A program made the translations under genes and the position numbers. 64,000 bases of DNA from Zygnema circumcarinatum SAG 698-1b (lineage: Eukaryota; Plantae; Zygnematophyceae). Below the pieces are notes generated by a model. The model made no database searches, was not told the origin of the DNA, and saw only the letters and a list, made by a program, of their open reading frames with translations. Below are positions 5,444 through 37,849 of the stretch, one piece after another (the stretch's first letter is position 1; each line of letters starts with the position of its first letter). The DNA lies in NCBI GenBank assembly GCA_037447605.1, contig JBBHKD010000010.1:1-64000 (forward strand), given 5' to 3'.

Positions 5444-6375
5444 TTAGTTCCCCTTGGGCCCTAGTTTCATGAGACCACTACAATTCCCTAGTGTCCCACA
5501 ACTACATGTATGCTCCCTTGTCTTCACAAGCTGCCCCCTCTTGATCCAAAGGCCCGAGAGATCATCATCCCCCTCTTGATCCTCACTTGGTCGCCTTCCA
5601 CACTCGATCCTGGGCGCTTCCGCTGAACTCCTCATAGGTCCAGCAACCGGGTATTCCTTTGTAGTTGCAACCTTGTACTCGGGCTGCTCCACTACCCTGG
5701 GTTGAAAGGACCCCTCCACTTCAACTCCATCCTTGTTTGGATGCAACAAGCCCGTGTTTCNNNNNNNNNNCTCTGAGTGATCCTGGAATTCGCACACATT
5801 CTCACCACCACTAATGTCCACCCTTTCGGTGATGGGTCTTTTGACCCCCTTAGCCTGGCTATCTGAAATGTCATTGGCGAAATAATCCCCTGCTCCCCTG
5901 AGCCTCAATGCTTGCTCTAGCATCCCCTTTCCTCCTCCAAGCTGGTCTGAATCTATCTTATGGTGAATGGGTTCCTCCACAGGGTCCTTGGCGGGATAGC
6001 TTAGCCCTTGAGCCTCCTTCCACTCTAGAAAGTAAAGCCCACCTTGCTGGATTCCCTTGCACAAGACTTGCCCTGTCTCCTTGTGAATGACCTCACAACT
6101 ACCCTTCTCAAACCATACTCCATAGTCCTTCTCACACAGCTGACTAACAGAGAGGAAATTAATCTGTAGTCCGGGAGTATGCAGTACGTTATCAACATTG
6201 ACAACCCTCTGCGTGCTTCCCTCCCGAGCACCTCCAACTGGATTGTTCCGCTTTGCGTCACCGAAACCCCTTGTCCTGTTGCCGTGTAGACCGAGCGGGT
6301 TCCCTCCAAAGTCTGCTTCTCTGCAAAGAGTGAGTCGTCCACGCACATGTGCCTTGAAGCACCGGAATCAATCAC
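5444..6375 (-). pseudogene. Second family A unit: protease plus C-terminal extension
   Basis: IDSGASRHM, NFLSVSQL, GGLYFL. The ORF runs to ...GLMKLGPKGN* just before the PPT. Confidence 0.75.
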
Positions 6376-6436
6376 CCAAGGTTTCGTTGAATCCTCANNN
6401 NNNNNNNGTCCTTAACTACTTTACACTAACACATTG

Positions 6437-6770
6437 ATGAGGACCAAGTCCTTTCAGTCGAACAGAAGTAGGTTAAACCGACACTTTAGGGTGAAGGGCT
6501 TTTAAAGAGAGGGCTGCATGTGCTTGGGCCGCTTCAGAGACGCCGAAGGATATGGATTAGGGTTAGGGTTCAGGAGGACATGGCGCTCTCAGAAACGGGA
6601 AAGGACTCAGACAACACTCATGAAATAAATTTAATGTTTTATTGAAAGTGCAAGAGGAAGTGAAACTGAACTGAATCAGGACTGGAAGTGAAACTGAATC
6701 TGACTGACAATTTTTGATCCAGTAAGGAAAGAGATAGAAAGCGATGCAATTACCCACAAAATTTTTTTTA
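6437..6770. repeat. Dispersed spacer module, also at about 16690-17060, 20425-20800 and 24120-24470
   Basis: Direct repeats of ATGAGGACC...GATTAGGGTTAGGGTT(C/G)AGGAGGACATGGCGCTCTCAGAAACGGG...(GAAACT)n. Confidence 0.8.
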
Positions 6771-7099
6771 TTTTTTTTACAGAGCGGTCGACCATTTGTC
6801 TCTTTGTAAAGTAAACACCGCGCTCGACAACCTTGATAAAGTCACGAGCTTCGAAGCGCTGACCTTCCCTCACCTCCTCCCACTACGACTAAGTCTTGGC
6901 CTGGCTAGCGGGCAAAGCCCAACATTCAATTATATTTACAAATAAACAATGGTAAAATTCCTTGTGACTCTATCAAGGTCTGCCCCTACAGGGACTTCAC
7001 ATTTAGCGACGATAAAAACCCTCACACTTTCTTTAAGCCTTCCCTAAAACACAATATGAATATTCCACCTCCAAAAGGGCTTATCGACCAACGCCGGAG

Positions 7100-10000
7100 T
7101 GGACTCCGCCTTCAAAGTGGCCTTGACCCGCCGCCCTCTGCATATAATCAATCACACTTTCCACGTTTTTCGTCACGCCTCGTTCGTCCAAAAAGCACAC
7201 TCCCACGTTAAACTGAGCGTCCTTGATCTTCTGTCCCCACTGTTAGTCTCCGCAACATATTTGCAGCCTAAGCATGGGATTGGTCGGCCGCTTTTATGAG
7301 CATTCTCACCGCTCGTACCATGTCCTTTTGAATGATTCCGTTCTCGTCCGCGAAAATCACGCCCAACAGAAACTGTGCATCGTCATCTCCTTGATCCGCC
7401 GCCTTTTGAAACAACTCTACAGCGCGATTCATGTCCTTGTAACAAAACTACCGGTCATGTACAGCATCCCTAACCAGCCCAGGGCATAAGAATCACCATT
7501 CTGCTTGGCGCATGAAGATCGCTGAACGCGCGGTTCCATGTCCTTTTGAAAATTGCACCTCCTTGTCTGGCGCGCTTTTGAAGCGGCTCTGGCCGATTCA
7601 TGTCCCATACTATAACACCACATTACGGTCATATACGGCATCAGCCCCAGATTGATATGAGCTAAAGTTGGCCATTCTCTGCAGTAGCGCCTATAAAACT
7701 GAACCGCTTGTTCCATGTCTTTGGGGACTCCTTGTCCATTCGCATAGCACACGCTTCTGTACTGGGCATCATGGGTTATTCTTCGCAGCGCTTATAAACC
7801 AACGGCCTGCTCCATGTCTTTGTGTGACCTCCATTCCTCGTAGCACCAACCCAATTGTTTTGGGCCCTCGATCTGCCATTCCCTCGGCAGCCGCTGCCTA
7901 TAAAACTGAACGCGGGCTCGCTCCATGCGTTCTTGGGGACTCCTTGTCCATCTTCGCATAGCACACTCTAAATTGTACCGGGCACCACTTTTATGGCTTA
8001 CCCTTCGCACGCCTATAAAACTGAAATCCGCCTCGCTCCATGTCTTTAAATCTTTCATTCCAGCACACACCACACAGGCCGGCCACCTGATGGCCATTCT
8101 CTCGCCGCAGCGCCTATAAAACCGAACGGGCCTCGCTCCATGTCTTCTCGCACTTCCTTCTCCATTACTTTAGCACCAACCCAAATTGATTTGGCCGGAG
8201 GGGATTGCTATTCTTTCTGCGCTGCGCCCGCAAAACTGAACGCTCGTTCCATGTCTTTGGGGACTCCTTCTCCATTCGCGTAGCACCAACCTAAATTGTA
8301 CTGGGCCTCAGGATGGCCATTCTCTGCAGCGCGCCTATAAAACTGAACGGCCTGTTCCATGTCTTTGGGGACTCCTTCTCCATTCGCGTAGCACACGCCT
8401 AAATTGTACTGGGCCTGAGGATGGCCATTCTCTGCAGCGCGCCTATAAAACTGAACGGCCTGTTCCATGTCTTTGGGGACTCCTTCTCCATTCTCGTAGC
8501 ACCAACCTAAATTGTACTGGGCCGGAGGATGGCCATTCTCTGCAGCGCGCCTATAAAACTGAACGGCCTGTTCCATGTCTTTGGGGACTCTTCCATCAGA
8601 AGCACCAACCTGGCCTGTGTTGGGCCTCAGACTGCCATATTCCTCGCAAGTAGCCGCAGGTAAAACTCCAACGCTCGTGTCGTCTTTTTGGGGACTCTTC
8701 TCCATTCTCCGCTGCAGCACACTTAAATCGTACTGGGCCAGTGATGGCCATTTCCTTCGGCAGCCGCCTATATAAAACCTAACGGGCTCGCTCCATGTCT
8801 TTTTGGGGACTCTCTTTCTCCATTCTCTAGCACACCTTAAATTGTACCGGGGCTCGAGGATGCCATTCTTCAAGTAGCCGCTTATAAAACCGGAACGGGC
8901 TCGTGTTCTTTGCTGCTCCGGGACTTTTCTCCATTCTCGTGAAGCATCAAACCCGCAGAACCGGTGGGCCCTGCAGATCTCATATATATTCTTCCTCGCA
9001 AGTAGCCGCTTATAAAACCGAACGGCCCTGCCTACGTCTTTGGGGACTCCTTCTCCATTCTCGTAGCACACGCCTAAATTGTACTGGGCATCACGATGGC
9101 CATTCTCTGCAGCGCGCCTATAAAACTGAACGGCTTGTTCCATGTCTTTGGGGACTCCTTGTCCATTCGCATAGCACACGCCTAAATTGTACCGGCATCA
9201 CGCATCGCCATTTCCCTCGCAAATATAAACCGAACGGGTTGCTCCACGTCTTGGTGACTCAAATCCAAACTCGTAGGCTCTGACCTAAACAAGATCGGCA
9301 TCACGACAAAGCATACTTCGCTAGCCGCCTATAAAACTCAACGCTTGTTCCATGCCTTGGTGACTCCAAATCCAAACTCGGTGAGCCTCGACCTAAACAA
9401 GATCAAGTACACGACGCCATTCAAGAGCGCCGCCTATAAAACTGAACGGCCTGTTCCATGTCTTTGGGGACTCCTTCTCCATTCGCGTAGCACCGCCTAA
9501 ATTGTACTGGGCATCACGATGGCCATTCTCTGCAGCGCGCCTATAAAACTGAACGGCCTGTTCCATGTCTTTGGGGACTCCTTCTCCATTCGCGTAGCAC
9601 ACGCCTAAATTGTACTGGGCATCACGATGGCCATTCTCTGCAGCGCGCCTATAAAACTGAACGGCCTGTTCCATGTCTTTGGGGACTCCTTCTCCATTCG
9701 CGTAGCACCAACCTAAATTGCATTGGGCCGCAGGACGGCCATTCTCTGCAGCGCGCCTACAAAACTGAACGGCCTGTTCCATGCGTCTTCGTGACCTTCT
9801 CCATCCGCCGCAGCGCACACCCCAAATCGGTAGTGGGCATCAATGCCATTCTGTACGCCTATATAAAAACTCCAACGCCTCGCTCCATGCGTCTTCTTTT
9901 GGGGACTTTCACTCTCGCATAATAACACGCAATTGTACTGGCATCAATGCATGGCTGGCCTTCAGCCGCTATAAACCGAACACCCGGCGTGTTCCATGTC

Positions 10001-10406
10001 TGGGGGACTCTTTAGCGTAGCACACACCTAAACTGAACTGGGCATCACGATGGCCATTCTCTGCAGCGCGGCTATAAAACTGAACGGCCTGTTCCATGTC
10101 TTTGGGGACTCCATCACCATTCGCATAGCACCGACCTAAATTTAACTGGGCCTGAGGACTGCCATTCTCTGCAGCGCGCCTATAAAACTGAACGGCCTGT
10201 TCCATGTCTTTGGGAACTCCATCACCATTCTCGTAGCACAGACCTAAATTGCACTGGGCCGTAGGATGGCCATTCTTTGCAGCGCGCCTATAAAACTGAA
10301 CGGCTTTTTCCATGTCTTTGGGGACTCCATTTCCGTTAGCGTATTGCAAAGCTAAACGGAACTGCGCCTCAGCCTTATCCTTGATCTCTTGTTTAAGGGT
10401 TTCGAC
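7100..10406 (-). CDS. Exon 2 of 4HB-Sel1 gene A: about 29-30 tandem Sel1 repeats (108 bp, 36 aa); frameshifts in this assembly
   Basis: Acceptor TTGACTCGTCAG|GTC (VETLKQEIK) at 10406. Repeated GHxxAQxNLGxCYxNGxGVPKDMEQAVQFYRRAAEN. The CCATGTC anchor recurs about every 108 bp from 7318 to 10308. Confidence 0.85.
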
Positions 10407-10756
10407 CTGACGAGTCAAGGCAAGGAGGGGAATCACAAGTCAGCATTGTCGGAAATGCATACCTAAATGGATACAGGCAAAAACTCAGGGTCCAGGGACT
10501 CGGCTTCTGATATGTTCTTAACGCATTCTAAGACAATTTTCCTAACTGGGGGACGGTTCAAATCCACATTCGTTCAATCCACATTCGTTCAAATCCATTC
10601 TCTCCTCAATCTGTTGACGAAGCAGCCTTTGTCCTGGTAGGCAAGTCAATCACAGACAGTGATAGGTGAATCTGCAGATGCATAAACATTTAAAGCCATC
10701 CCAGAAACTTACAGCATGCCATCACAGCGCTTCTGCAAGTCCGCTCCGAAACGCAC

Positions 10757-11182
10757 CTGAGCATTTGGATCGGATTGGGTCCCTAGTAGATTGGTTTTCT
10801 GACTCGGAGAAGGTGGTTGACCGCCTCTCTCCGCTTCTCTCACCACCAGAAATGTCAGCCGGAAGGAGAGCAACTCAGCCTGAATTTGTGTAATTTCTGC
10901 TGAAATGCTGTTAGCAGACATGAGTCGGTACGCAGTGCTCTGGTTGCATTTATTTGCAACAACGATTGCCCTCTTCATGATAGACTGAAACTGGCGTATT
11001 GCAAGTTTTTCTAAATCACTCCCTTGGTAACTTCTACTCTTCATCGCTTCGTACACGATATTCATGGTCTCGCTCAGCTCCTTGCCATTCTTTCTATGTG
11101 ACCTCACGTTCTCCCACACAGCCATCACTTCCTTCACAAGAGACCCGACTTCATTCACAGCAGACAGGGACATAAAATCCAT
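10757..11182 (-). CDS. Exon 1 of 4HB-Sel1 gene A: 142-aa helical domain resembling MCAfunc/MLKL-NTD/RPW8
   Basis: Strong Kozak context GCCGCCATGG. 426 nt open. Donor CAG|GTGCGT in phase 0 matches the exon 2 acceptor. Motifs VRSHRKNGKEL and MKRAIVVANKCNQSTAYRLMSA resemble MCAfunc (judged by eye). Confidence 0.75.
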
Positions 11183-12561
11183 GGCGGCCGGGAAGGTCTC
11201 GCAAGGATTTTCTCCTTCTAATTCTCCTTAATTTTCCCCGTCTTCCTCCCCCGCCCCCTCCCTATACCTCTCCCTCTCCCTTTCTCCCTCTCTCTGATTT
11301 TCTCGTCCTCCAAAAAGCGCGCTTGACCATACGCGAATTCGTATGACCGTCTGCCCACGTCAGCACGTCCGTACGGCCAACGATCCAACGGGGACCTGCT
11401 GTACGGCCAACGGTCGACGGCGGTCAAACGAGAAACTTTGCCGTGCCCGCCGGCGGCGCGGTCAAGCACCAAGAGCGCTACTGTACGCGACTACAGAAAG
11501 CACCCCTAACATTTTCCACGCTCGCTTCGTTTCTTTGACCCAATACGAGATCGGCCAGTCTCCATCAGCCCGTTTGTAACGAGCTCATTCACGGTCCGGC
11601 AGGGGCCCGTTTTCGCGGATAAACGGCGAGTTCCATCAAACGCCCGTTTTTCCAATCGTGATAAAGCGCGTGCACGCTTTGGGCGTCGCCGTGGCCCACA
11701 TTGTACGATATGCGGCGTCCGTCGGCATTTTAGGGTTTTGCGGGAGGCGGCCGGACGCGCCCACTGCAGCCGCCACACTCCCTCCCTTCTCGTCCCCTCC
11801 TTTCCCTACCTTTCGCTGACGCGTCATTGGCGTTGCCTCCTGCAATTCCGGCGGGAGGCTTCGTTCCCTTTCGTCGTCTTCTCTCAGGTTTGGTAGTACT
11901 GGCAACACTCTCGACAGCATTGTGGATCGAAGAGCCCACTCTTGTTCGCGGTGCCCTCGTATCTCCACTTACTAATGCTGGTGCCTTCATAATTTGCACA
12001 CCAGCAATTGGCCACTCTCGTTCGTAAGCCATCTTTTGCTCGGTGATGTACTTTCTCAACAGCAGGTACACATGGAACAACTTCTGAATTGTTTCCAACA
12101 AAGAGCATGAAGATTAAGTTCAGTTGAATCCATTCTTGAGAAATTGAGGAGGATATATGTATGTTGAGCAATTGAGCTAAAAAGCATTACAATCCACAAT
12201 TGTGTATGGCCCCATTCATTTTTCCCATGTGAGAGAAAAATACATTTCGAGATGCTGTTTTGTCCCCGGCGCCACTAAGTGCTCAATCCATTCTGCACAC
12301 ACTTGAGAGCGTTAGGGGGCTGCATTCGAAAGTAATTCGTGCTACCCGGAACAGCGACTCCATTTTTGCTAATTCGCATCCAAGGCACATTCTTGCCACG
12401 ATTGATACATTAATCTTGAAAAGTAGTGCTAGAGCCAGAATGAGTCTGGCTGCTGTCAGGAATGTTTCAAAGCTCAGCTCTGTCTGATTGGTCGTGTTTC
12501 CGCCATAAACAGACACGTATGTCTATTCTCCATTGGCTGATTTCTCTCTTTGTTGTCAAGA

Positions 12562-12809
12562 GGCTTCTTGCTTCTTGCTGCTTGCTGCTTGCTTTTCGCT
12601 TCTGGCTTCTGGCTTCTGGCTTCTGGCTTCTGGCTTCTGGCTTTTTGCTTTTTACTTCTTGCTTCTTGCTGCTTGCTGCTTGCTGCTTGCTTTTCGCTTC
12701 TGGCTTCTGGCTTCTGGCTTCTGGCTTCTGGCTTCTGGCTTTTTGCTTTTTACTTCTTGCTTCTTGCTGCTTGCTGCTTGCTGCTTGCTGCTTGCTGCTT
12801 GCTTCTTGC
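12562..12809. repeat. 7-bp minisatellite (GGCTTCT/GCTTGCT)n with about 90-bp higher-order duplication
   Basis: Directly visible. It generates the spurious LASGFW-repeat ORFs. Confidence 0.9.
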
Positions 12810-15289
12810 GAATTACATACAACCCTACGGAAAAATTATTACATAAACAACTACAGACTACAAAGGCACACAAAGAGACAATAAATGGCAAAGATAAAGT
12901 GAAAAAAAATCATTTTCGAAAAATAAAAACAAAGAGGCAATGGTTTCTATGCACACCTCTATTTCTCTACCCCTTCCTCAACCTTTCTTCTTTCCCTTTA
13001 TTTTCCCCTCATTTTTTAGCCATTGGCTTTGGTGTCGCAAAGCCACTCCAATTTCGTTTTTTTCCTCTCCGAAACACAAGCATCATTAGAAAAAAGCCAT
13101 CCAAGAGAATGGAAGCAAAAATCTGAAAGTGAAAAATTGCCAATCACGTACTCAAATTAATTAAACAAAAAGAATAATAATAATTACAACCCTAATCAAT
13201 TGCTTCTAAAGTAGCTGAATTAACTTGGCGACACAACCATTAGACACGCTAGGTGGCGGAGTCTCCCTCCTTCCTCCTAACAAAAAATCTCCATCGTACG
13301 AGTAAAGGGACACAAAACCCCCCTTCGGCATGCTCAGGCCGTCTCAAACTAATCCTAAAGGCTGAGAATGGGAAGAGCCCTCACATTGCTCATCCTATTC
13401 TAGGGTTAGATGCGAGCTTAACTCTGCTGACCCTCCCTCACACTTAGCGAGCTTCAGCCCGCTTTGGCTGACTGACTCATGGGAAACGCCCGTTGTCGGA
13501 TTCAGGGCACTCGGACTTCTCATCGTGGTTTTCCAAATAAGTTGGCAGCCGTGGCTGGCGCTTAACCGGAGGATTTCCTGCGGCCCGGGCGACTGCGTTT
13601 CACGACCTGGCGGTCGCGGCGTTAGCGGCTTCTAGCCAGCGTGGCGGTCGCGCGCTGGCGTATCTTTGGTAGCCCGCGTGGCTGACGCAGCGAATGAGCC
13701 GTAATGAAGTACACCACCTTCTTCGGACCCGTCACCGGGGAGCGGGCCTGCCGTTACCGCGTGGCAGCCCGCGTCGGCCCGCGTTGGTGAAAACGGCCTC
13801 ATGGAACCCATGGGTCGTCGTCCATTACGACGCCACGTCGGAATAACGGGCTGATGGAAACTGACCCTTAAGGAGCATAGATACTGCTCGGTCATCGATT
13901 TTCGGTGAAAAAAAAAGGGAGAAAGCACAAATTTTAGCATTTTTTCATTGTTTGAATGGCAAGTAAACGTTACAGGCCAGCAAACACTTCTCGTATTGGG
14001 TCAAAGAGACGAAGAGGCTCAAAGAGGTCGCAAAGTTAAACATCCCTCAATGCCACAATGTTTGATGATTGTCCGGATGTGTCTGGCAATGCTTGTGGAA
14101 TTATAATGCGTTTTTAGGGTTTAAAAACCTTTTGGTTCTAAAATCAAATCTGCCCGACGGAAAATGGAGTGTGTATAGACAAAAAAGGTGTAAAAAAATC
14201 ATTTTCGTTTTTAATCCTTTTTTTTTTAAATAGAACCTGCCCGGTGAAAAAAGGTCTGTGTGTAGACAAAAAAGGTGTGAGAACACAATTTTCCAATTTC
14301 AAAATCGTACGGTATATGTGAGGAACAACAAGGAGCTCGTGTAACTAAATGTACGGTACCAATAGGAGCAAGTGTGAGAGAGAGAGAGAGAGGGAGAGAG
14401 AGAGAGAGGGGGCCACTACCGCGCCAGAGCCAGCTCCGTACCGTGTGGCCGTACAGTTCGGTTGGTCAACGCGGAAAGGTGAGGTCTGCGTATTCTAGTC
14501 ATCACGATTAGCGAATAGCGACAAGAAAATTGATGGAGACTTTTGATTGATTGATAGATTGATTGACTAGTGATTGATAGCGACCAGCTCCCCGTGGTTT
14601 CCCCGTGCTGACTTTGACCACGTATTCGTGAGGTCAATGCCACTTCCCATTATCCACTTTTCTAATCAGGTCAACGCAGTACGGCGGTCTGAAAATTTTA
14701 GTCGTCGCGAATCGCGGTTAGCGAACAGTAACAGGTCTGGAAGTTCATGGTCGTCGAACTTTGTCGGGTAGCGAGCAAGTGTCAGACTTTTGTTGTCCGT
14801 ACAGTCTACAGTGTACTCGCGTTATAGTGACCATATCGATCCCAACGTATTTGTGTCACTAGGGCGTGTCAGACTTAACAAAATGTTACGAATATCGAGT
14901 TTTTAGTATTACGAGAATCGAGGTTACTAAGTACTAAAAATCATCGTGCCCCCGAACCTAAACCGAACCGAACGGAAGTCAACTGTGCTAAGTCAACGGG
15001 TCAACGTTGCGAAGATTGACCCGTGGGGTTTACTAAAAAGGGCACTTCTTCGCACGATTTTGTTCGCACCCAAAAGAGGCGCCGAAATGGACGTGCGAAG
15101 AAAATACTGGCGAAAATCGCGTCAACGTGACGTCATGGTTGTTTTCCCGGCTTCCCGCCCGCGCCCGCGCCCGCCCGTGACGCGCAACACGACACAACGA
15201 CAAGCGGACTCCGCGCGCCGCGCCGGCGCTGTTTCTAAGTCTGAGGGCCCCGCGNNNNNNNNNNAGTGGGGTCGAATGTCGGTTACTGC

Positions 15290-16200: not shown

Positions 16201-17413
16201 GCCCGCGGCCGCTGGCTCGTTTTTGGCAATTTCTTGCGGCTGCCAGGAGAGGGCCCCGTCCGGCGCATACGACAAATATCGGCGCCCTCTCCGGCGCGAG
16301 CCATTTGGCTTCGTCCTGTGATTGGCTGCCGTGCGATTTGGGGCTTGTCGTGAGGCGGTTGTCGGCGTACCTCAAACGCGGGAGGGGACTGACCACGTGG
16401 CGATCGATGGATGGCTCACTGGAACCCGTGAGAATTCGACTCACACGTGTGACTGCCGTGCGGGACTGCGAAACTGTCGTCCAGAATAACGGAGCGAGTC
16501 ACATGGAGCGGCAAGCAGGCGAGAGCCTTCACCGACGGGCGGGGCTCTGCAGGTTCGCTAAAACGAGGACTCGAGAGGGCTGTCAACTGGACGAACAAGA
16601 ACTCGCAAACGACCACCAACAGTAAGAGAGAAGCAGCCATGGAGGAAGCTAAAGATGCGACAACCATGGACGGATCTCAACGAGAGAGGCACATGTGATG
16701 AGGACCAAGTCCTTTCTGTCGAACAGAATTAGGTTAAACCGACACTTTAGGGTTAAGGGCTTTTAAGGAGAGGCTGCATCTGCTTGGGCCACTCCGCCGA
16801 CGCCGAAGGATATGGATTAGGGTTAGGGTTGAGGAGGACATGGCGCTCTCAGAAACGGGACAGGACTCAGACAGCACTCGTGAAATAAATTGAATGCTTC
16901 ATTGAAAGTGAAATAGAAAGTGAAACTGAAACTAAAACTGCAATTAAAACTGAAACTGAAACAGGAATAGAAGTGAAACTGAATCTGACTGACAATTTTG
17001 AGCCAGGACAGAAATAGATAGAAAGCGAACACATTTGGGGGCAGAGCTTGGGCGTTCACGCCCTTTATTTTTTCTGATAGCAGCCACAAAGTAGGAGAAA
17101 GGTGGAGATGGGGGAAGAGAGAGAGCGAGTGAGAGACAGGGAGAAGAGTGAGGGTGAGGGAGACGAGGTGCGGGAAAAGTAGAGAGAGAGAGTGAGAGGA
17201 GGAGAGGGAGAAGGAGAGGGTGAGGAAGAGGAGAAGGATGAGGGTGAGGGGGTAAGGCAGAGAGAGGGCAGAGGGAATGGGTGAGGCAGAGAGAGATAGA
17301 GCGAGAGAGAGAGAAATAGAGAGAGACAGGAAGACAGAGGTAAGCGGGGGAGAAGGAAGGGTGGGCCTCTGTAGGTTGACTGAAATGGAGTTGACCTAAA
17401 ATCTAAATCCCTT

Positions 17414-20358: not shown

Positions 20359-21149
20359 CACTCAAAAATTTAATAATCTCCCTCGAGGAAGCTAAAGATG
20401 GGCGGACTTCAACGAGGGAGGCACATGTGATGAGGACCGCGTCCTTTCAGTCGAACAACAGAATTAGGTTAAACCGACACTTTAGGGTTAAGGGCTTCTA
20501 AGGAGAGGGCTGCATGTGCTTGGGCCCCTCCGGAGACGCTGAAGGATATGGATTAGGGTTAGGGTTCAGGAGGACATGGCGCTCTCAGAAACGGGAGAGG
20601 ACTCAGACAACACTCATGAAATAAATTGAATGCTTCATTGAAAGTGAAATAGAAAGTGAAACTGAAACTAAAACTGCAATTAAAACTGAAACTGAAACAG
20701 GAATAGAAGTGAAACTGAATCTGACTGACAATTTTGAGCCAGGACAGAAATAGATAGAAAGCGAACACATTTGGGGGCAGAGCTTGGGCGTTCACGCCCT
20801 TTATTTTTTCTGATAGCAGCCACAAAGTAGGAGAAAGGTGGAGATGGGGGAAGAGAGAGAGCGAGTGAGAGACAGGGAGAAGAGTGAGGGTGAGGGAGAC
20901 GAGGTGCGGGAAAAGTAGAGAGAGAGAGTGAGAGGAGGAGAGGGAGAAGGAGAGGGTGAGGAAGAGGAGAAGGATGAGGGTGAGGGGGTAAGGCAGAGAG
21001 AGGGCAGAGGGAATGGGTGAGGCAGAGAGAGATAGAGCGAGAGAGAGAGAAATAGAGAGAGACAGGAAGACAGAGGTAAGCGGGGGAGAAGGAAGGGTGG
21101 GCCTCTGTAGGTTGACTGAAATGGAGTTGACCTAAAATCTAAATCCCTT

Positions 21150-24053: not shown

Positions 24054-24631
24054 CACTCAAAAATTTAATAATCTCCCTCGAGGAAGCTAAAGATGGGCGG
24101 ACTTCAACGAGGGAGGCACATGTGATGAGGACCGCGTCCTTTCAGTCGAACAACAGAATTAGGTTAAACCGACACTTTAGGGTTAAGGGCTTCTAAGGAG
24201 AGGGCTGCATGTGCTTGGGCCCCTCCGGAGACGCTGAAGGATATGGATTAGGGTTAGGGTTCAGGAGGACATGGCGCTCTCAGAAACGGGAAAGGACTCA
24301 GACAACACTCATGAAATAAATTGAATGTTTCATTGAAAGTGCAAGAGGAAGTGAAACTGAACTGAATCAGGACTGGAAGTGGAACTGAATCTGACTGACA
24401 ATTTTGAGCGTGGACGGAAAGTGATAGAAAGCGAATGCAATTACCCACATTTTTTTATATATTTTTCCAGAGCAGTCGACCATTTGGTAGGGTCTCTTTG
24501 TAAAGTAAACACCGCGCTCGACAACCTTGATAAAGTCACGAGCCTCGAAGCTCTGACCTTACCTCACCTCCTCCCACTACGACTAAGTCTTGGCCTGGCT
24601 AGCGGGCAAAGCCCAACATTCAGTTAGATTA

Positions 24632-25156: not shown

Positions 25157-27037
25157 TATTATAAATAAAGGGGGCGACTATTTACAGTGTACGGATTCTG
25201 AATGTAGTGTACGATTCGCCGGGCAGCAAAAAATCCTTTTTTTGGTTGCCCAACGCTGTTTCATACTTTTTAGAATAGATACAGACCTTTTTTTAGGTAG
25301 GATGTCGCGGATAGTGATTTGAAATGTACCTAGCGTCTACAAGGTATAAGGCATAACCGCGTGGAGCAACATGATTGGTCGCGGCAACATATGGCGTGGC
25401 AAGTATGTTTGGGACCGTGACTGACAAACGAGCACGACAAAAGTGGAGGCCGCGGGCGCGTCGAAATGGCGATAAAAACTGACAGATTTTTCTCAAAAAT
25501 AGCTCCATCTGTGCCCTGTCTTTCTCTGTCAGTTTTAATTCCGGCCATCGGATTCCATGCGCGGCTCCATTGTCGTCTCATTTGTCACAGCGCTGCTGCC
25601 AGTAGTCGGTCTTATGGCCCCTATGCTGTAGCACGCGCACCTGAGTCAGTCTCGTACATCCGCAAACTCTGTATCTATTCTGAGAAAGTCGCGTGGGCAA
25701 GGGTTTTTCTGCCAAGCGATCATATACATTGGGCACTCCTGATGGTCACCTGTGACAGTAAAATTCCTTGTGACTTTATCAAGGTATGCCCCTACAGGGA
25801 CTTCACATTCAGCGACGATAAAAACCCTCACTCTTTCTTTAAGCCTGCCCTAAAACACAATCTGAATACACCACCTCCAAAAGGGCTTATCGATCAACGC
25901 CGGAGTGGACTCCGCCTTCAAGTGGCCTTGACCCGCCGCCACTCCATCACTCTTTCCACGTGTTTTGTCACGCCTCGTTCGTCCAAAAAGCACACTCCCT
26001 CGTTAAACTGAGCGTCCTTGATCCCCTGTCACCACTGTTAGTCTCCGAAACATATTTGCAGCCTCAGCATGGGATTGGTTGGCCGCTTTTGCTTTAACAC
26101 CATGCAAATTCCTGCATCCTATACAATTGAACGGCCTTTTCTATGTCTTTGGGGACTCCTTCTCCCTTCCTGTAGCAGTCACCTAACTTGTCATGCGCGT
26201 GATAACTGCCATTCTCTACAGCGCGCCTATTAAACTGAACGGCCTGTTCTGTTGGTGCAAGGGGCAGCAAGAAAGGAAAGACTCAAGGAAGGGCAAACAC
26301 ATGCCTGGGTATCAGAGCTCAAAACTTTTCTTCTACTTCTCCTTGGGCCACATACCGCTTCCGCCACGATATGCCTTCTCGTCCACCTCTTGCCAGGTGC
26401 GCACAGCGGAAAGCTAAACACACCACCTACAAGAACTTTTCTTCAACTCCTACATGGTCTCGGCTCCTCAACTCCACGCTCCTCCAATGATCTCCTCGTG
26501 TGGAGCAACACACCGCCCATACAATGGTCGCCTCCACTCATCCACCACGTCAATCCAACACGAGGACTCACATGACAAATGATACAGTAGTAAGGAGAAA
26601 GCCCACGGCCCCAAAACTCCTTAAACTTCATGAGTGTAGTACATGTTAGTGTACATAGTTAGTTCAGATTAGCATGTTTGTGTTGGCGCTTAGTTCCTAG
26701 GGGTGTGCTTCTAGGTGTGACATGTATGGGGACGGACTTACTTCAGCGTGCGCGCGGCGGCGAGACCGACCGCGCAACCGTACGGATAGTATGGACCGTA
26801 CGGACCGTACGGTCGGTACGGACAGTACGACCGGGAGTCCGACATTTGGTACCGCGCCGAGGAATCGGTCCTGGCGTACGGAATCGTGGACTGATGCGGC
26901 AGCAAAAGGCGGCGAAGTTGGTGGAGTCGGCGGAGCCTATTTTGCGTACGGAAGATAGTCCTTGTGGGTGACGGCGGGAAGTTCAGCTCGGCAGTAGAGT
27001 ACATGGCCATCTGGGTTAGAGCGGTGGTGTTGGTACG

Positions 27038-28231: not shown

Positions 28232-30709
28232 CTTAAGCCGAGGAGGGGACCTTGGCTGCTGGTGTGGGGCGCACCGTGACTATGTGGTGCCCCTACGTGT
28301 GAACCAGTTCTCACGCTTCGAACCTAGGACCTCCGTCGTCCTATAGGGTATCCGATACCCTAACCATTAGGTAATGCATTGGATGGAAACATAAAGCCAC
28401 GCCGGGCCCTAAGTAACCCTTCCCCCTTGGGGTGACTATAGCGTATCGCTACATTACTCCCCCCCTGTGAGAATGGGAACGCCCTCGTTCACGTGTGTGG
28501 GGTAGTAAAGGCAACTCGTAGTTTCAACGGCACGCGTCGAACTCTACGTGATAACCGGGAGGGCTCAGCGATAATCCCGGTCAAGTCCCTTTCCGAGTTG
28601 CGCGGGGACGGCTCGGGAACCCCCCGTGCCGCCCTTGCCCGCTCTCCTGCGGCCTGCGCCTCCCAGTACAAGTTTATGAGCTCCTGGCAATTGGTTAAGT
28701 TGCCCTCGGCTTCCCATGTGCTATGTTCAACCCCATAGCCCAACCATTTCACGAGAAATTCGTGACGGGAAGATCGACCCTTTCTCACAAGACGGTGGGC
28801 TTGAATGGTTTCAACCTCATACTCAAGTTCACCTTCAAGTTCCACTGGTGGGGGAGGTGGTTGGATCCTCCCATCGCTACGGTAGGCCTTTAGCAAACCC
28901 ACATGAAAGACCGGATGCACCTTCATGTGGTGGTAAATCAACGATGGCGACCTCATTATTCGCTTCCGCGGCGGTAAAGGAGTCGATGAAACGGGGCCCG
29001 CGACTACGTGTTCCGCGTGGCTTTGGAGTCTCAAGTTAGCGTACTTAGCAACACCTCGCCATGCCGTTGAAGGTGAGTTGGAGATGCGATGGCGGTCGGC
29101 ATAGGCCTTTTATGCTTGGCCCAGGAAGCATGGCGGTACGCCGTGCCCTGCAAAGCACCCTAGAGACGTGTAGGACAAAAGATCATTTACTTGAGGTTGA
29201 GTCCCATCGATCCCTCGGCTTCAAGGATGGGGGTTCTGTGAGCGCCCATGTTCCACCAGATCGAGGCTTCAGTCATACTTGATTTCTGAGGATTTAGAAG
29301 GAATCCCCGGCCCAAAGTTAAAGGGGAAAAGAAAGAGGTAGTACCAATAGACTCCCCAGTAAAGATTATTGATGGCATACTCCGCCCATTGGGGTGATTC
29401 GTCCCACCCATCCGAGTGGGTCCCACATAATGCGGAGTATCCTCGAGATCCTATTCACCCGTTCCGTCGGCCATCGGTTTCTTGGTGGAAAATTTGTACT
29501 CAACGCACACTTGGCGGTCCCCAGCGATTTTGAGCACTTAGTCAAAATGGTAGGTGAATCGTGGATCACGGTCAGACACAATTTCTGACTGAAGACCATG
29601 CTGGCTCCACACTTTGTCAACATACAACCGTGCAATCTCGTCGGCCCCAGCGGTCTTAGTAGTTGGTGCAAAGTGCACCATCTTCTTTGGCCGTCGACAA
29701 AGGCGGGGATGAGTCATGCCCACAGAGGTATCCGCGGGGAAGATCGTGATCAGAAGTCCATACCCTGCTTGTCCCATTCCGAAAAGGAGGTGTGAGGGTT
29801 GCTGGCTGGCGTGAGGATCCTGCAGTCTACAGGGGTTTTATTTCAGTGAAACCAGTTAGGACCAGCAGAGTACATAAAACTTTCACATCCCTCGAGAGTC
29901 CAGGCCACCAGAACTCTCGGAGCAGTGCCTCACGGGTTTTGGCAACTCCCATGTGACCTCGGTACGGAGGATCATGTAGCTCACCCAGAATGAGCTGCCG
30001 TACAGTCCCGGCCTTGGGCACGACCAACTGCTGGCCGTGGTACCAGAATCCGTCCTTAGACACCACTTTGTCCTTATAGCCATTACCTTGGCCATCCAGG
30101 AACAAAGGATCACCAGCATACCCCTCCTGGATCATCTGTCTGAGTTCAGAGAGAGCAGGAGGGTTGACTGCGTCACTGGTGGAGGGATCTATGACNNNNN
30201 NNNNNTGCACCATGAACAAGGTGCATCCCTCCTTAACTGCTTTGGCCAATTGCATAGCTGAGCACAGATAAGGAGTATCAGGTTGCTTGATAGCAAAGGA
30301 TGTGGAGGTGCCAGGGTGCAGGGTAAGCCGCCTGTCACCACTGTGCAGAATGCAATGTGGGACAGAAAAGTCCAATTGTGCCTTGACCATGGTTAACCAA
30401 GCACTCCCTAAAATAACATCAGTTCCAGGGGCCAGATGAGTCAGAAGACACTTGACTGCCCCGGAGTAGGATTGGAGCTTGATCTTGAGTGTGACGATGC
30501 CAGAGATCTGGCCCTTTCTTCCATCCCCGAAAGTAACACTTTCTGAATGGGGATCTGTGGTCAACCCAAATCTATGGGTGAATGCAGAACTAACAAAGTT
30601 AGCATCTGCCCCAGTATCTAGCAGTATAACTGCTAGGTGGCCATTGGCTGACCCGATGAAGGTCATGGCACGATGGGCAAGGTGGAACATAGATCGCACT
30701 ATATGCGAA
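28232..30709 (-). mobile_element. Chromovirus Gypsy family G1 fragments: protease, integrase, chromodomain, PPT, 3' LTR start
   Basis: LDTGADANF. Integrase zinc-finger region HDPPYRGHMG. HPVFHVGLLK. YEVETIQAHR...FLVKWLGYGVEHSTWE. PPT GGGGGGAGTAA then TGTAGCGATACGC at 28453. Confidence 0.88.
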
Positions 30710-30719
30710 NNNNNNNNNN

Positions 30720-32656
30720 GGTGGAGGCATCAGCTACGAAGTCTCAGGAGGAGACCTCCAGTTCACGAGAGGAGACAGCCAGCATGCCGCATAAGTTGGT
30801 GGCTTCAGAACCACGTGCAGCGGCAAATGAAGAGTTGCTGGAGGAGATGGCTGTTGAGCCAAAGGAGGATGCACCAGCTCCAATGCGAGTTGTAGAGCAG
30901 CCTCAAGAGCATCCCTCCGTGATGGAGAAGACAAGTGGGAGGACCAGGCGGCCTCCAAATCGTTTCAGTCCGGCTGTGCCTACAAAGCGCATGCGGAAGA
31001 AAGCACGAAAGAATGCCCAGGATCATTCTGCATCATTCTCAGGTGACATGGACATGATTGCCCATTGTTACATGGCCCATGCTGTTGAGCCTCAGACTTA
31101 CGGGGAAGCTGTTGAGGGGCCAGATCAGATCAAGTGGCAGGAGGCCATTGATAGTGAGTGGAACAGTCTGATTGAGAATCAGACTTGGCGCTTGGAGAAG
31201 CTCCCACCTGGGAGGCGTGCCATCGGCAACAAATGGGTCTTCAAGGTTAAGAGGAAGGCGGACGGCAGCATCGATAGGTACAAGGCGCGACTTGTGGCCA
31301 AGGGCTACAGTCAGAAGGAGGGGATTGACTACACAGAGACCTTTGCTCCTGTGGTGAAGTTCAACTCCCTCCTTTCCCTCATTTCTATTGCAGCCGCAGA
31401 GGGGATGCATGTCCACCTGTTGGACATCAAGACTGCTTTCTTGTATGGAGATCTTGATGAAGAGATATACATGGAGCAGCCGGAGGGGAAGTGCGAGAAG
31501 GGAAAGGAGAACCTTGTGTGCAGACTCGTGAAGAGTTTGTATGGGCTGAAGCAGGCCCCTCGCGTGTGGTATGAGAAGATCGATGAACTCTTACAGGGCT
31601 ATGGGTTTGATCGTTTTGAGACTGATACTTGTGTGTACTCAGTTGGCGAAGATGATGATAAGTTGTTTGTTGGGGTCTATGTGGATGACCTGATCATGAT
31701 CAGCAAGTCTCTTCGCAGCATTGCAGAGTTGAAGGAGCTCTTGCAGGAGAATTTCCAGATGACTGACCTTGGAGAGGCCCAATATCTCTTGGGGATCCAG
31801 CTGAAGAGGGGGCCAGATGGTTCACTATTCCTTTGTCAAAGGAAGTATGCAGAAGATGTGTTGCGGAAGTTCAACATGTGGGAGTGCAGGCCATGCACAA
31901 GTCCCATGGAGGCTGGAGTTCGCTTCACGAAGGAGATGTCCCCGTCTACAGAGGAGGAGGCAAAGGCAATGGCTGGAGTGCCATATCGATCTGCGATTGG
32001 GAGCCTCATGTATTTGATGACAGGCACGAGGCCTGACCTTGCGAAAGTCGTGAGCACGGCAAGCAGATTCATGGAGAACCCCGGCGAGGAGCATTGGGAA
32101 GGAGTCAAGCGTATATTTCGGTTTCTGAAGGGAACTGTGGATTATGGCCTCAGGTTTGAGAGGGGGACTCGCAGCCGAGTCTATGGCTATACAAACGCTG
32201 ACTGGGGAGGGGATTTGGATTCATCCCGCTCCACATCTGGATACGTTTTCTTGAATGCAGGTGGGGCCATCACGTGGAACTCCACCTTGCGGTCTTGATA
32301 GCCCTCTCGTGGCGGAAAGCGAGAGTATATAGCTGACTTGCCATGCTGGCCGGAAAGTGTGTGTAGGCTGGCGGAACTTCTTTAAGGGAGTAGTGGCGGC
32401 CTGCAAACCCTTACCACTTTCTTCACCGGACAATCAGTCCTCTATTGCTCTAATGGGGAATCCGGTGTTCCACAAGCGGAGCAAGCATTTCCGGATCCAA
32501 TACCATTACGTGAGACAGGAGGTGAGAGAGGGACTTGTCAGTATCAAGTTCATTGGAACCAGGGAGCAGGCAGCCGATATGCTGACGAAGGCAGTCAGTG
32601 GTGAGACCTTGAGGATTAATTCGGATCTCATTGGGCTGGGGCCTCTCAGGAACTAA
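30720..32656 (+). CDS. Copia B reverse transcriptase and RNase H (late frameshifts)
   Basis: [75 protein letters not shown]. Confidence 0.92.
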
Positions 32657-35600
32657 AGTGCCAAAGAGGGGAATGTTAGTGTACATAGTTAGTTCAGATT
32701 AGCATGTTTGTGTTGGGCTAGTTCCTAAAGGGTGTGCTTCTAGGTGCGACATGTATGGGGAGGGGACTCCATTTCAAATATGAGATGGGCGCGAGAGAGA
32801 CTGACTCGCGCAACCGTACGGATAGTATGGACTGTAATGGACCGTACGGTCGGTACGGACAGTACGACCGGGAGTCCGACATTTGGTACGCGCTTGCCGA
32901 GGTCGGTCTGGAGTACGGAATCAAGGAATGATGCGGGCGGCGGGCGACGGGCGCTGGAGTCGGGTGGAGGCGTAAGTGAGCTTACTTTTGGTGTGAGTAA
33001 AGATAGTCTGGTGGGTGTTACATGGAAGTTCAAATTTCTGCTGTAGAGTATATGTGGCCATCTGGGGTTGGGGAGCGGTGGTGTTGGTAATGCTGTTGCT
33101 GGGGTGTACTATGTATAAGAAGACACGGCAGTTTATTTAGGTTGTTTGAATAAGGTTGTTGCATGCATGGTCCCGGCGCGTGTGACGTGACATGGTCACG
33201 TCACAGCCCCATACTATATAGTGAGTGTGGGTGTGTAAGTTAGCAACCTTCTTGATATGCATTGCAAGGCTATGGCAGTTTGAAGGCATGGCTTTGGCAA
33301 CAGGAGGTGGACCTTTGTGAGGAGTCTCCGTGTGTGGAGAGCTGCCTCACGTGAAGGTGAAGTGATCATGTGGTGAAAGCTTGACTAGGCTTATGGGGGC
33401 TTGAGTTGGAAAGCTTGTCATCATAAAGGAGTTTTAGGCTGGGAGCTTTCTCCTACGTTTTTTCTATTCCGCCTCTCGTGTGTTGTGTATGCACGTGAGT
33501 GAAAAATGAGTGAGAGTGCTACGGGCACCAGGAGGGAAGTTTCCATGGACAGTGAAGAGGGAGAAAGGGTGGAAGGTGAATTTGCTTCTCATCCCTCTGC
33601 CCCTCTCACAGTACAAGCTCCTTTAGGAAATCTACATAATCCCTTATGCTAGATTCTCCTCCTCTCATGAGCACTATCCTATCCTCTCATAGATAGCCTA
33701 CGCCCCAACTGCTGTAGCCAAGCACTACTTGCCTCCATGAACTCCTCCTCTACCTCAACACATGAGGGACACACCATCTAGCTCCTTCACTAAAGCTTAG
33801 CATGATGAGAGCTAGTTCCTTCACGACCTTCATACACAAGGCCGGACTCCTCTAGGCCTCAGCCTCTGCCTACTCTTCCTATACAACAACGGTCGAGCAG
33901 CATAACACTCAGAGAGAGTGAGTGAGTGAGGGAGCCAAGCTTGCTCCCTCTTAAACTATGGCGGCCGGCGTGACGTGACCACCGATGTCACGTCACAGGC
34001 GCACTAGCAAGCGCATGCACTCAACAGNNNNNNNNNNCCTAAGCCGTAATTCTACGACCCTAGACCTTCCCTAGACCTGCCGTACCATGCCCTATCGATA
34101 CGGGCACCCCCCATGTTCGGTCCTACACCAAACATGACCGTTCATACATGACATTGTCCCTATACCACCACATTGATGTCCCGGACAACATCCATACTAG
34201 GAACTAAGTACCAACACCTTGATGTACCCTATACATCAACATGTTCCATGTCTTTGGGGACTCCATCGCCGTTGTAATAGCACTTACCTAAATAACACTG
34301 GGCATCACGATTGCCATTCTCTGCAGCGCGCCTATAAAACTGAACGGCCTGTTCCATGTCTTTGGGGACTCCATTTCCGTTAGCGTATTGCACAGCTACA
34401 CGGAACTGCGCCTCAGCCTCATCCTTGATCTTTTGTTTAAGGGTTTCAACCTGACAAGTCAAGGCGAGGAGGGGAATCACAAGTCAGCATTGTCGAAAAT
34501 GCATAAGGAAATGGATGCACGCAAAAACTCAGGCTCTAGGGACTCGGGGTCTGATATGTCCTTTACGCATTCGAAGACAATTTCCTAACTGGGGGACGGT
34601 TCAAATCTCTCCTCAATCTGTTGACGAAGCAGCCTTTATCCCGGCAGGCACATCAATCACAGACAACGACAGGTGAATCTGCACATGCATAAACTCCCAA
34701 ACCCATCCCGGAAACTAACAGAATGCCATCACAGCGCTTCGATTGCAAAATTCGGCACGGAAACCGCGGCTCCCCCTCAACCTGTCTGTCCCGTCCGTAC
34801 TTCGAAATAGGTTACAAAATGAGATGGGCTGCTCAAGCCGCCCGAGCCTCTAACGCTCACTTTTGGCGGTAAGAAGGCCCGCCAAGTATAACGCCGGAAT
34901 CTGCCCCGACGCTCGTATGCACTAGTCGACCTCACCATGGCCAAACCAAATTCGTAAGCCCGTCGGGCCTATTCCGCCGTGTACGGCAGGCCTTTTTCGC
35001 AAAAAGTGGCTGCTCCCCCGCAGGTTTGGGCTCCTCGACATCAAGAAAATAATTATTTTACCTTCGTATCTTCGAGCCAGGTCTGACCCCCCCCTTTTCG
35101 CCCCGCCGCGCTCCCTCCGCCGCCCGCCGCTGTAACAAACCCGACCTCAGCAGGGTTTGAACACAAGACCTCCCGGTACCCACACCAGTGCTTTACCATT
35201 AAAAGGCAACCGCGGATGTAAGTACTAGGCCATACAACACATGTATAGCGTTTCGCTACATTCCTCCCCACCTAAACCGGGCTCGTCCTCGAGCGCACTC
35301 AAGGGTTTTCACGAGCAGCGTTCAAGCTCCTTCAACACATGGACTACGGCCCTAGCCCCTCAGGCCACTAGGGGGACCGGACCCGTAGCATGTGTTAGTG
35401 TATAGTAGTTAGTCACTAGACAAGTTGTTGTTGGGACATTAGTTTTGTGTGCGTGTGTTGTGTGTGTGGCCCTTGGCGGCGATGTGCGCCTAGACCGACG
35501 GGCGGCGGTACGGACTTTGGTCGGCGAGAGGCGTTGGCGTTGGAGTCACAATTGACGAGGCGCGATGCTGGTTATTCGAAAAAATGTGACGTGGCGCGGA

Positions 35601-36324
35601 CGCGGACGATGGAGTCAATCAGATGGTGGCGCGACGCTGGCGGACCCGCGCGCGAATCATAGCGACGCTGCGCGGCGTCACCTTTGGATTGAATGATTCG
35701 GACTTAACGCCATGCGACGTCAGAATGTCGGCGCGCGATTCATCATTGTACGGAGCGGCGTCAGATGTCGGTGGCGTGCGACGACGCGGAGTTTGACGCG
35801 TCATCAATCTTGGAGGCGGGGTCAGATCCTACGGCGCAAGACGTGGATTAGCTTAGAGGCCGAGTCGGATCTGACGGAGGAAACGTACGGGATCCGTGTG
35901 AGCCGACGAGGATCCGACGGCGCAGGATGAGGATCGGGATAGGGCCCTTGCGGGCCGCTAGCCGATGTTGTGAGCTTCGTTGTATGGTAGTGTCACGGAT
36001 GTTGTGACATAGTATATAGTGTGTTGTTTTGTTTGGTTGTTTATCTTAACTTCTGGATCACCAGCGTAGCTATTGTAGACTCTGAGAAGCTGTTGCTCGT
36101 GTTGCTTAACACTACACTTGCTTGTGCTGCGAGGTAGTGGGCTTTTGAGTTTATTGGGCTAGTTGAGAGGGGGTCTCTCAATTGTGGTGTTAAGATCATT
36201 ATTAAGGAGTTTTAGAGCCGAGAGCTTTCTCCTATCCTTTTCTCTCTGTTATTCCGCTGTGCATATTCTGTGAGGTTCACTCTGTGAGTAAAATGGGCTA
36301 TGAGTGAATGTGAGAGTTTGGGAA

Positions 36325-37849
36325 ATGTCATCATCGATTGGAACGCGAACTCCGATGGAAGGTGATGCGAGTGGAGAAGCCGGCAGCAGTGGAGGAGTCC
36401 CTGCACCAACAAGTGGTATCAGAGCTCATGGAGACTCGGAGGACCACGTCAAGTTCAGCATTCCGGCCTTTGATGGGCAGGATTACAAGGCGTGGAGATG
36501 GAGGTTGGTTCCCTTGCTTGTAGGCAAAGGGTTGCTTGGGTATGTTGATGGCAGCATCAAGGCGCCGGAGTTACCGGTTGGAGCCTCAGCGGAGCAGCAG
36601 TCGGAGTACGACGTGGCGCTCGCACGATGGAAAGCCAAGGACAACAAGGCCCTGACGCAGATTGTAATGAGCGTAAGAGGAAGTCCGTCCTCTATGCTTT
36701 ATGATCTGAAGACCTCTCATGCCATGTGGAGATGCCTAGAGGAAATGTATGATGTAAAAGACAATGTGACGATCGTCAGTCTTTACACGCAGCTAGGCAA
36801 GATGAAGATGACTTCAGAGGAGAAACTAGAAGCTTATATGGTCAGATTTGATGCATTGATGGAGAGGTTCATAGCCTTGGGGAAACCGTTAGATGCAGAC
36901 CATAAGACAAGCCAGTTTCTAGGGGGTTTGCCCGGGAGATTCGAAGTTTCAGTGGCAGCCTTGAGGACAGTTCTGACCAATACCTCTATGACGCTTGAAC
37001 AAGTTAAGCGTAGGATAAAGGAGGAGGATTCGATTCAGGATGTCGGCGGCCAAGAAGAGAAGGTGCTCGCGTTGCACACTCGACCGAATCGAAGAGGAGG
37101 AGGCGCCCCGAAGTCAGCCCGAGGAGAACGCTCGAATGTGACATGCTTCACATGTGGCAAGACCGGCCACTACTCCAGCGACTGTTTCAAGAACAAAAGC
37201 AGTCCAGAGAAGGGAGGAAACGCGACTTCATCCGGCAAGAAGGAGAAGAAGGCGTTCAGCGGCACTTGTTTCAAGTGCAAGAAGAGAGGTCACAAGAGTT
37301 CAGACTGCAAGGTAGCAGTTGAGAGCAACCTCATGCTGGCAGAGAATACTGAGCACGATTTTGTGGGAAGGATTCAGGCAGAGGACCTGAAGCGGCCGTG
37401 GCTGATTGACTCCGGCGCTTCCACGCATATGTGCGGAGACACATCGATGTTCTCCAAGCTCGACAACTTGGAGAAGGCTCGCTCAGTTCATTCAGCAACC
37501 GGTGAAGGAGTCACCGTGACGAGAGGTGGAGCCGTGAGGATGATACTCGGAGACGGCTCGGTCATCAATGAAGAAGACATACAAGAGAAGTTGTCAAATT
37601 GGTGACGTTCTTCACACCCCTGAGCTAAAGCAGAATTTCATGTCTGTTAGCCAAGTGTGTAAGAAAGGATACAGTGTTCTGTTTGAGGAGAAGTCATGCG
37701 TGGCCATCCATACAGAAACTGGGAGACAGCTGTTTAGGGGTTATGAGAGAGGAGGGCTGTATTATCTTGATTATAAGAGGGAGAATTATGAGCATGCCAA
37801 TGCAATCTCAGAGAATGCTGTAGATGTATGGCATAGAAGACTTGGTCAC
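36325..37849 (+). CDS. Copia D gag, two zinc knuckles, protease, start of GAG-pre-integrase (one frameshift at about 37600)
   Basis: KFSIPAFDGQDY, CFTCGKTGH, CFKCKKRGH, WLIDSGASTHM, GGLYYL, WHRRLGH. Confidence 0.9.

Follow-up and report, generated by a model that had tools for sequence, protein, structure and literature searches.

Can a four-helix bundle of the kind that executes cell death be coupled directly to an array of repeats when neither a nucleotide-binding nor a kinase domain intervenes? The question is raised by a locus on the minus strand of a 64,000-nucleotide (nt) stretch of the Zygnema circumcarinatum SAG 698-1b genome (contig JBBHKD010000010.1, positions 1 to 64,000; hereafter the window), in which the original prediction, made from the sequence, saw a putative immune receptor: an MLKL/MCAfunc/RPW8-like bundle spliced directly to about 30 Sel1 repeats. 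The locus bears on how cell-death bundles were first linked to sensors: a bundle joined to repeats without an NTPase switch or a kinase, in a relative of the land plants, would represent such a link in a simple form that can be tested. The bundle-Sel1 gene is real and is spliced as predicted; the copy of it in the window is either decayed or badly assembled.

Gene structure, splicing and transcription

The coding region opens with an ATG at 11182 in the Kozak context that had been predicted (gccgccATGG), and all of the predicted coordinates for the gene start proved correct. Exon 1 (11182-10757) comprises 426 nt, or 142 codons, and ends in phase 0. It encodes a predicted four-helix bundle of the RPW8/MLKL-N/MCAfunc-like superfamily (amino acids [aa] 4-120; 10823-11173), followed by a disordered linker rich in Pro, Ser, and Gln (aa 121-142; 10757-10822), for which no secondary structure is predicted and the predicted local distance difference test (pLDDT) score is 41-50. 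Intron 1 (10407-10756) is a phase-0 GT-AG intron of 350 nt, with the donor CAG/GTGCGT at 10757/10756 and the acceptor ccttgactcgtcag/GTC at 10407/10406, downstream of a pyrimidine-rich tract. Exon 2 starts with VETLKQEIKDKAE and reaches its first Sel1 unit after 13 residues. The 22-aa linker and the intron are thus all that lies between bundle and repeats: the Pfam search and the spliced frame revealed no NB-ARC, NACHT, or kinase domain between them, as the original prediction had held, nor does an MLKL-type brace region with a C-terminal kinase or pseudokinase follow the bundle, the gene having no kinase match. Within the intron, Tandem Repeats Finder (TRF) reported a 15-bp tandem mini-repeat of 2.7 copies at 10556-10597.

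The splice is visible in public data. Contigs of four runs labelled as the same organism, one DNA-like (X1) and three RNA-like (X14, X7, and X25), were aligned on 6900-11400, and a single joint that skips exactly 10407-10756 (joint 10404->10755, cut +2) is present in X14, X7, and X25. Its ends read CT..AC on the plus strand, which is GT..AG in the sense of the gene; in X1 the intron is covered and the joint is absent. The spliced contigs of the three RNA-like runs are 98.8-100% identical to the window. This copy, or one at least 98.8% identical to it, is transcribed, and the lack of transcription or splicing that would mark a pseudogene was not found in these runs, with the proviso that a twin copy may be the source.

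The transcripts need not come from this copy in particular. A 342-nt spliced contig is an exact match to the window for 86 nt at the start of exon 2 and differs from it at 3 of 256 exon-1 bases, and the spliced contigs may as a whole derive from a twin. Five exon-1 positions distinguish the runs from the window, and at four of them an amino acid changes (E35V, M40V, N77D, and A84E); the transcripts therefore come from this locus in another strain, from this locus with the window carrying assembly errors, or from a twin copy about 99% identical. More broadly, all covering runs agree with one another and disagree with the window at 7004, 7114, 7379, 7435, 10932, 10954, 11065, and 11079, of which six are substitutions and two are 1-nt indels, all within some 1.6 kb of unique sequence. 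Either the window represents another strain or it retains residual assembly errors.

Contigs of X7 and X25 reach 11237 and so define a minimal 5' untranslated region (UTR) of 55 nt (11183-11237), in which there is no upstream ATG; the DNA upstream of 11237 is GA-rich and of low complexity, and was skipped in the contig alignment. At the other end, RNA-like contigs without joints cover 6900-7267, a 3' UTR or flank, and one contig of X7 extends about 389 nt past 6900. Just downstream of the gene lies one member of a dispersed repeat of about 320 bp (6430-6744, 16690-17028, 20422-20764, and 24117-24430; 84%-91% identity), which may add to the high RNA contig depth there. Contigs of public runs also have loose ends: they match the window as far as 10407 and 11157 and from there run on into unrelated sequence. 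One combines the same intron with another exon 2, and one has a 5' end of its own as well as 6 inserted nt (11011-11015). These ends suggest expressed paralogues that join the same intron or bundle to other partners.

The Sel1 array and its disruption

As DNA, the array is long and regular. It has a period of 108 bp with 68% matches and 12% indels (TRF), and a hidden Markov model of the unit (nhmmer) delimits 25 units between 10366 and 7663 (array 7663-10367), followed by three weak, divergent C-terminal units. The units of the array are Sel1 repeats, with Pfam E values of 1e-31 to 1e-48 and PF08238 scores of 141 and 161 bits in clean blocks and 47.5 bits in the C-terminal part, against a cut-off of 30.7. 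Counts of indels and stops per unit divide the array into clean blocks (approximately 10367-10044, 9728-9514, 9195-9007, and 8522-8308) and broken ones (10043-9731, 9512-9207, 8946-8526, and 8306-7663). Ten of the 25 units are clean, eight of them at full length, and are 90%-98% identical in DNA to the consensus. In the other 15 there are 68 indel events, of which 60 shift the frame, as well as 213 substitutions and some in-frame stops. The divergent C-terminal Sel1-like repeats (7087-7561; Pfam Sel1 E = 2.1e-12 for 7274-7447) are spread over three frames and contain an in-frame stop at 7270-7268, after ...AADQSHA.

As protein, the array is another matter. The open part of exon 2 (9969-10406; Pfam Sel1 E = 5.8e-42) consists of a 13-aa helix, three clean Sel1 units, and a partial fourth that ends at the first premature stop (9971-9969), so that the spliced open reading frame (ORF) has 142 + 145 = 287 aa and comprises the bundle and 3.3 Sel1 repeats; as assembled, this copy would yield a protein of at most that length. 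Because 60 indels shift the frame and no frame is open throughout, the roughly 30 Sel1 repeats of 36 aa that were originally claimed stand as units of DNA (25 and about three more, of 108 bp) and fall as a readable protein. Additional introns that skip the broken units were considered and are unsupported: the contigs show just one joint over 4.5 kb, and the broken units, being full-length repeat copies in register, do not look like inserts. Such introns would be hard to see, however, in short contigs, which do not resolve joints within repeats.

The eight clean full-length units differ among themselves in an uneven way. Replacement codon differences outnumber silent ones by 36 to 14, and 25 of the 36 replacements fall at codons 3, 7, 13, 35, and 36, while codons 14-33 are nearly invariant, even in their DNA. 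Homogenized repeats with changes focused on a few sites are known from the repeat sensors of fungal nucleotide-binding, repeat-containing receptors (NLRs).

Has the gene itself decayed, or has its assembly failed? The reading we prefer, to which we give about even chances, is that this copy is a decaying member of its family in a transposon-rich region. Decay is favoured because random error would not yield derived features common to several broken units, such as the "cg" insertion before CATGG found in three of them and the GGAGCGAG variant found in five; two adjacent broken units also have the same deletion. Substitutions in broken units show no bias of codon position (70/77/66). A further argument for decay is the presence in the window of two truncated copies of the gene, lying among copia and gypsy remains. 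The first (34242-34740, minus strand; 82.8% identical to 10198-10733) preserves the intron together with the beginning of exon 2 and its first two Sel1 units; no bundle exon precedes it, and the copy stops close to a gap at 34028-34037. The other (25758-26249 and 24117-24630, minus strand; about 91% identical to 6430-7295) retains a single Sel1 unit along with the divergent C-terminal repeats and 3' flank, and is split by about 1.1 kb of inserted DNA. At about 26090 it encodes Glu in place of the stop that follows QSHA in the main copy; a later frame break is common to both. No second bundle exon was found elsewhere in the window by tblastn with exon 1.

Alternatively, the gene might be intact in the organism, encoding about 1,200 aa (the bundle and some 26-28 Sel1 repeats), with the breaks introduced during assembly of the tandem repeats. 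We consider this possible, if somewhat doubtful, and several observations count in its favour and against decay. Contigs of three runs carry an extra base at 7435 that joins two Sel1 frames, and all four runs lack one base at 7114. One contig of X1 has an extra base at 9494, where a 1-nt frameshift interrupts a unit that is near-perfect in other respects, and this base restores ...NLGWCYANG... (the effect of read-supported variants on the frame was computed in silico), but the contig may come from another unit or from a paralogue. Depth is zero in all four runs over 7504-8107, 8561-9013, 9165-9466, and 9769-10070, and the unique flanks are covered; matches to the degenerate blocks were sought at 95% identity or more, however, and a hole in contig coverage of this kind proves nothing. 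The ratio of indels to substitutions, 68:213, is high at about a third, the transition/transversion ratio is 0.88, and an excess of CpG transitions is absent from the broken units, a test that proves neither side. Most broken units also still read as good Sel1 repeats once indels are ignored. Against assembly error stand the identical indels and substitutions in several broken units, the sizes of the indels (half of them are 2-7 nt, with insertions and deletions in balance, unlike raw long-read noise), and the unique flanks, which have only about two indels in 1,600 nt. The public-contig search with the 323-aa and 157-aa ORFs has nothing on record and supplies no independent contig for the degenerate blocks.

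The surroundings are rich in transposable elements. Fragments of copia and gypsy long terminal repeat retrotransposons (RVT_2, RVT_1 with RNase H, gag, protease, and integrase) occupy most of the window, with ORF fragments at 5444-6375, 29830-32295, 36304-37602, 39885-41240, 44009-45340, 48864-49862, and 62138-62872. On the plus strand, an ORF of 140 aa (12462-12884) encodes a simple repeat rich in Leu, Phe, Ala, Ser, and Cys (LLASGFWLLASGF...) and is more probably a translated microsatellite than a gene.

Fold and possible role of the bundle

What the first exon encodes was approached through structure prediction and through searches by sequence, shape, and language-model features. The single-sequence AlphaFold2 model of exon 1 (pLDDT 71.5; predicted template modelling score 0.66) has helices at residues 4-24, 27-48, 56-81, and 90-120, followed by the disordered tail (121-142). 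Compared with structures in the PDB by Foldseek, the model is closest to the CC-R domain of Arabidopsis NRG1.1 (template modelling [TM] score by target 0.66-0.69), and the MLKL four-helix bundle and the Rx coiled-coil (CC) domain are also in the list. Among Swiss-Prot models, DAR5, HR1, and the ADR1/NRG1 group rank on top. The leading clusters of the AlphaFold database (AFDB) are MLKL-domain, DUF7792, MCAfunc, CNR13, Rx-N, and fungal N-terminal-domain proteins; the best is annotated as a "mixed lineage kinase domain-containing protein" (E = 1e-3, TM 0.72), all 30 top cluster matches have probabilities of 0.99-1.00, and most of those with names belong to the HeLo-like superfamily. An Atlas shape search placed an RPW8 cluster on top, and a protein-language-model search placed exon 1 nearest to streptophyte MCAfunc, MLKL_N, DUF7792, and RPW8 clusters (top score 0.96; 210 of 256 features shared). 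The sole Pfam match of exon 1 is to RPW8 (PF05659; 12.3-13.5 bits, E = 0.06-0.13) and is co-linear over 95 residues (aa 13-107 against profile positions 14-110).

Other results weigh against a closer assignment. The RPW8 match falls short of the gathering score of 30.4 bits, and exon 1 has no Pfam match to PF22215 or PF19584. Exhaustive phmmer comparison of exon 1 with 1.84 billion representatives yielded no true relative, the lone match (P0001, a coiled-coil repeat protein) being judged spurious, and phmmer against PDB sequences gave HlyD coiled coils alone (E ~0.1). The four helices are connected as in the RPW8/CC-R/MLKL-N/MCAfunc superfamily, a likeness that is weak by itself in so common a fold. 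VIA-align matched the model to MLKL (4btf; Z 11.9, rmsd 2.0 Å over 96 residues) and NRG1.1 (Z 11.4), but Z values of 10-13 were also obtained for Cbl-N bundles and designed proteins, so this range does not discriminate among helical bundles. Taken together, the model and the sequence comparisons give good support to placing exon 1 in the HeLo-like four-helix-bundle superfamily, at the level of the superfamily and not of any one family. The MLKL/MCAfunc/RPW8-like bundle of the original prediction is upheld to that extent: the structural comparisons are led by NRG1.1 CC-R in the PDB and by MLKL-domain, DUF7792, and MCAfunc proteins among the AFDB clusters, and the family thresholds by sequence are not reached.

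RPW8/CC-R, MLKL, and HeLo bundles execute cell death in plants, animals, and fungi. The locus is best explained as one copy of a family of genes that is lineage-specific and present in many copies in a streptophyte-alga-like genome. In this family exon 1 encodes a HeLo-like (RPW8/CC-R/MLKL-N/MCAfunc) bundle, which the 22-residue disordered linker and one phase-0 intron connect straight to a Sel1 solenoid, without a nucleotide-binding or kinase domain. By analogy with MLKL, with NRG1 and ADR1, and with fungal HeLo/HELL proteins, a sensor-executor role can be pictured for intact members: the solenoid might bind a partner or ligand and keep the bundle inactive; release or clustering might then let the bundle oligomerize on a membrane and disturb ion balance. 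That this scheme is drawn by analogy counts against it.

A different role for the same fold is conceivable. The bundle could serve for docking or as an adaptor, in the manner of Cbl-N or of the N-terminal domain found in plant U-box ligases, and the protein could be a Sel1 scaffold with no part in pore formation or cell death, which we regard as unlikely. In VIA-align the four-helix bundles of the Cbl tyrosine-kinase-binding (TKB) domain score Z 12, level with MLKL and NRG1.1, Sel1 proteins are classically adaptors (cited in PMC7145615), and helix 4, judged from its residues, does not have the basic patch that was mutated for the crystallization of NRG1.1. The neighbours found by the language model and Foldseek, on the other hand, are overwhelmingly MLKL_N, MCAfunc, RPW8, Rx-N, and fungal N-terminal-domain proteins and not ligase domains, and the gene has no U-box or other catalytic partner. 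It is highly improbable that exon 1 is an unrelated helical ORF that resembles HeLo-like proteins by chance, for although its model was built from a single sequence and the phmmer searches returned nothing better than coiled coils, independent methods agree on one superfamily, every listed top language-model cluster that bears a family is MCAfunc, MLKL_N, DUF7792, or RPW8, the named AFDB matches are mostly HeLo-like, and the lone Pfam match is a co-linear one to RPW8.

The most far-reaching form of the sensor-executor reading would have streptophyte algae possess a family of immune or cell-death receptors without a nucleotide-binding oligomerization domain (NOD), in which a homogenized Sel1 solenoid senses a ligand through a few hypervariable positions and frees an RPW8/MLKL-like pore-forming bundle, and would have this locus intact in vivo and broken by assembly alone. 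We think it improbable that all of this holds. If it did, a NOD-less bundle-Sel1 receptor would stand as a two-module forerunner of the resistosomes that plants form from RPW8-type and CC-type NLRs (RNLs and CNLs), or as an alternative to them. The value of the present locus is limited by an array that is untranslatable as assembled and by a domain assignment that stops at the superfamily.

Comparison with known systems

The closest relatives of the repeats (45%-65% identity) are bacterial Sel1 arrays fused to a trypsin-like protease, TIR, or caspase domain. They share the layout of an effector followed by Sel1 repeats, but are prokaryotic and bear other effector domains; among the top 120 Sel1 matches (proteins of 178-565 aa) none has a four-helix bundle, whether MLKL_N, RPW8, or MCAfunc.

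For the bundle, the animal and plant MLKL proteins and MCAfunc/CNR13 are alike in topology, and MCAfunc and MLKL_N form the nearest language-model clusters; unlike these, the present gene has neither brace helices with a pseudokinase nor PLAC8. RPW8/CC-R proteins (Arabidopsis RPW8/HR, NRG1, ADR1, and DAR5) supply the lone Pfam match of the bundle, its best Foldseek match in the PDB, and its top Swiss-Prot models. They differ in what follows the bundle, which is NB-ARC-LRR in NRG1 and ADR1 and LIM-peptidase in DAR5, as against the Sel1 array here; the present bundle, in turn, scores far under the Pfam cut-off (12.7 versus 30.4 bits) and has no basic patch in helix 4.

Fungal HeLo/HELL-NLRs, with their homogenized and hypervariable WD40, ANK, or TPR repeats, offer a parallel for the protein as a whole: both have a bundle and a repeat array, near-identical repeats, and changes at few codons. 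The Zygnema gene differs in having no NACHT or NB-ARC domain and no amyloid motif, and its pattern of hypervariability comes from eight units only. With no central NB-ARC or NACHT NTPase, it is not an NLR/STAND (signal-transducing ATPase with numerous domains) protein. Sel1 repeats are also reported for "MLKL family" homologues of Glomeromycotina (PMC8778642).

Of the same lineage are the NLR-like proteins of streptophyte algae, for which CC/RPW8-like bundles and alternative C-terminal repeats are reported (PMC10952240); NB-Sel1 fusions are reported from Klebsormidium (PMC7145615). These proteins share with the present gene the kind of N-terminal bundle and the replacement of LRRs by Sel1-like repeats, but have a central NB domain where the present gene has its 22-aa linker. 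We found no description in the literature of a bundle joined directly to Sel1 repeats. The bundle-Sel1 layout is a new variant of known executor-domain architectures.

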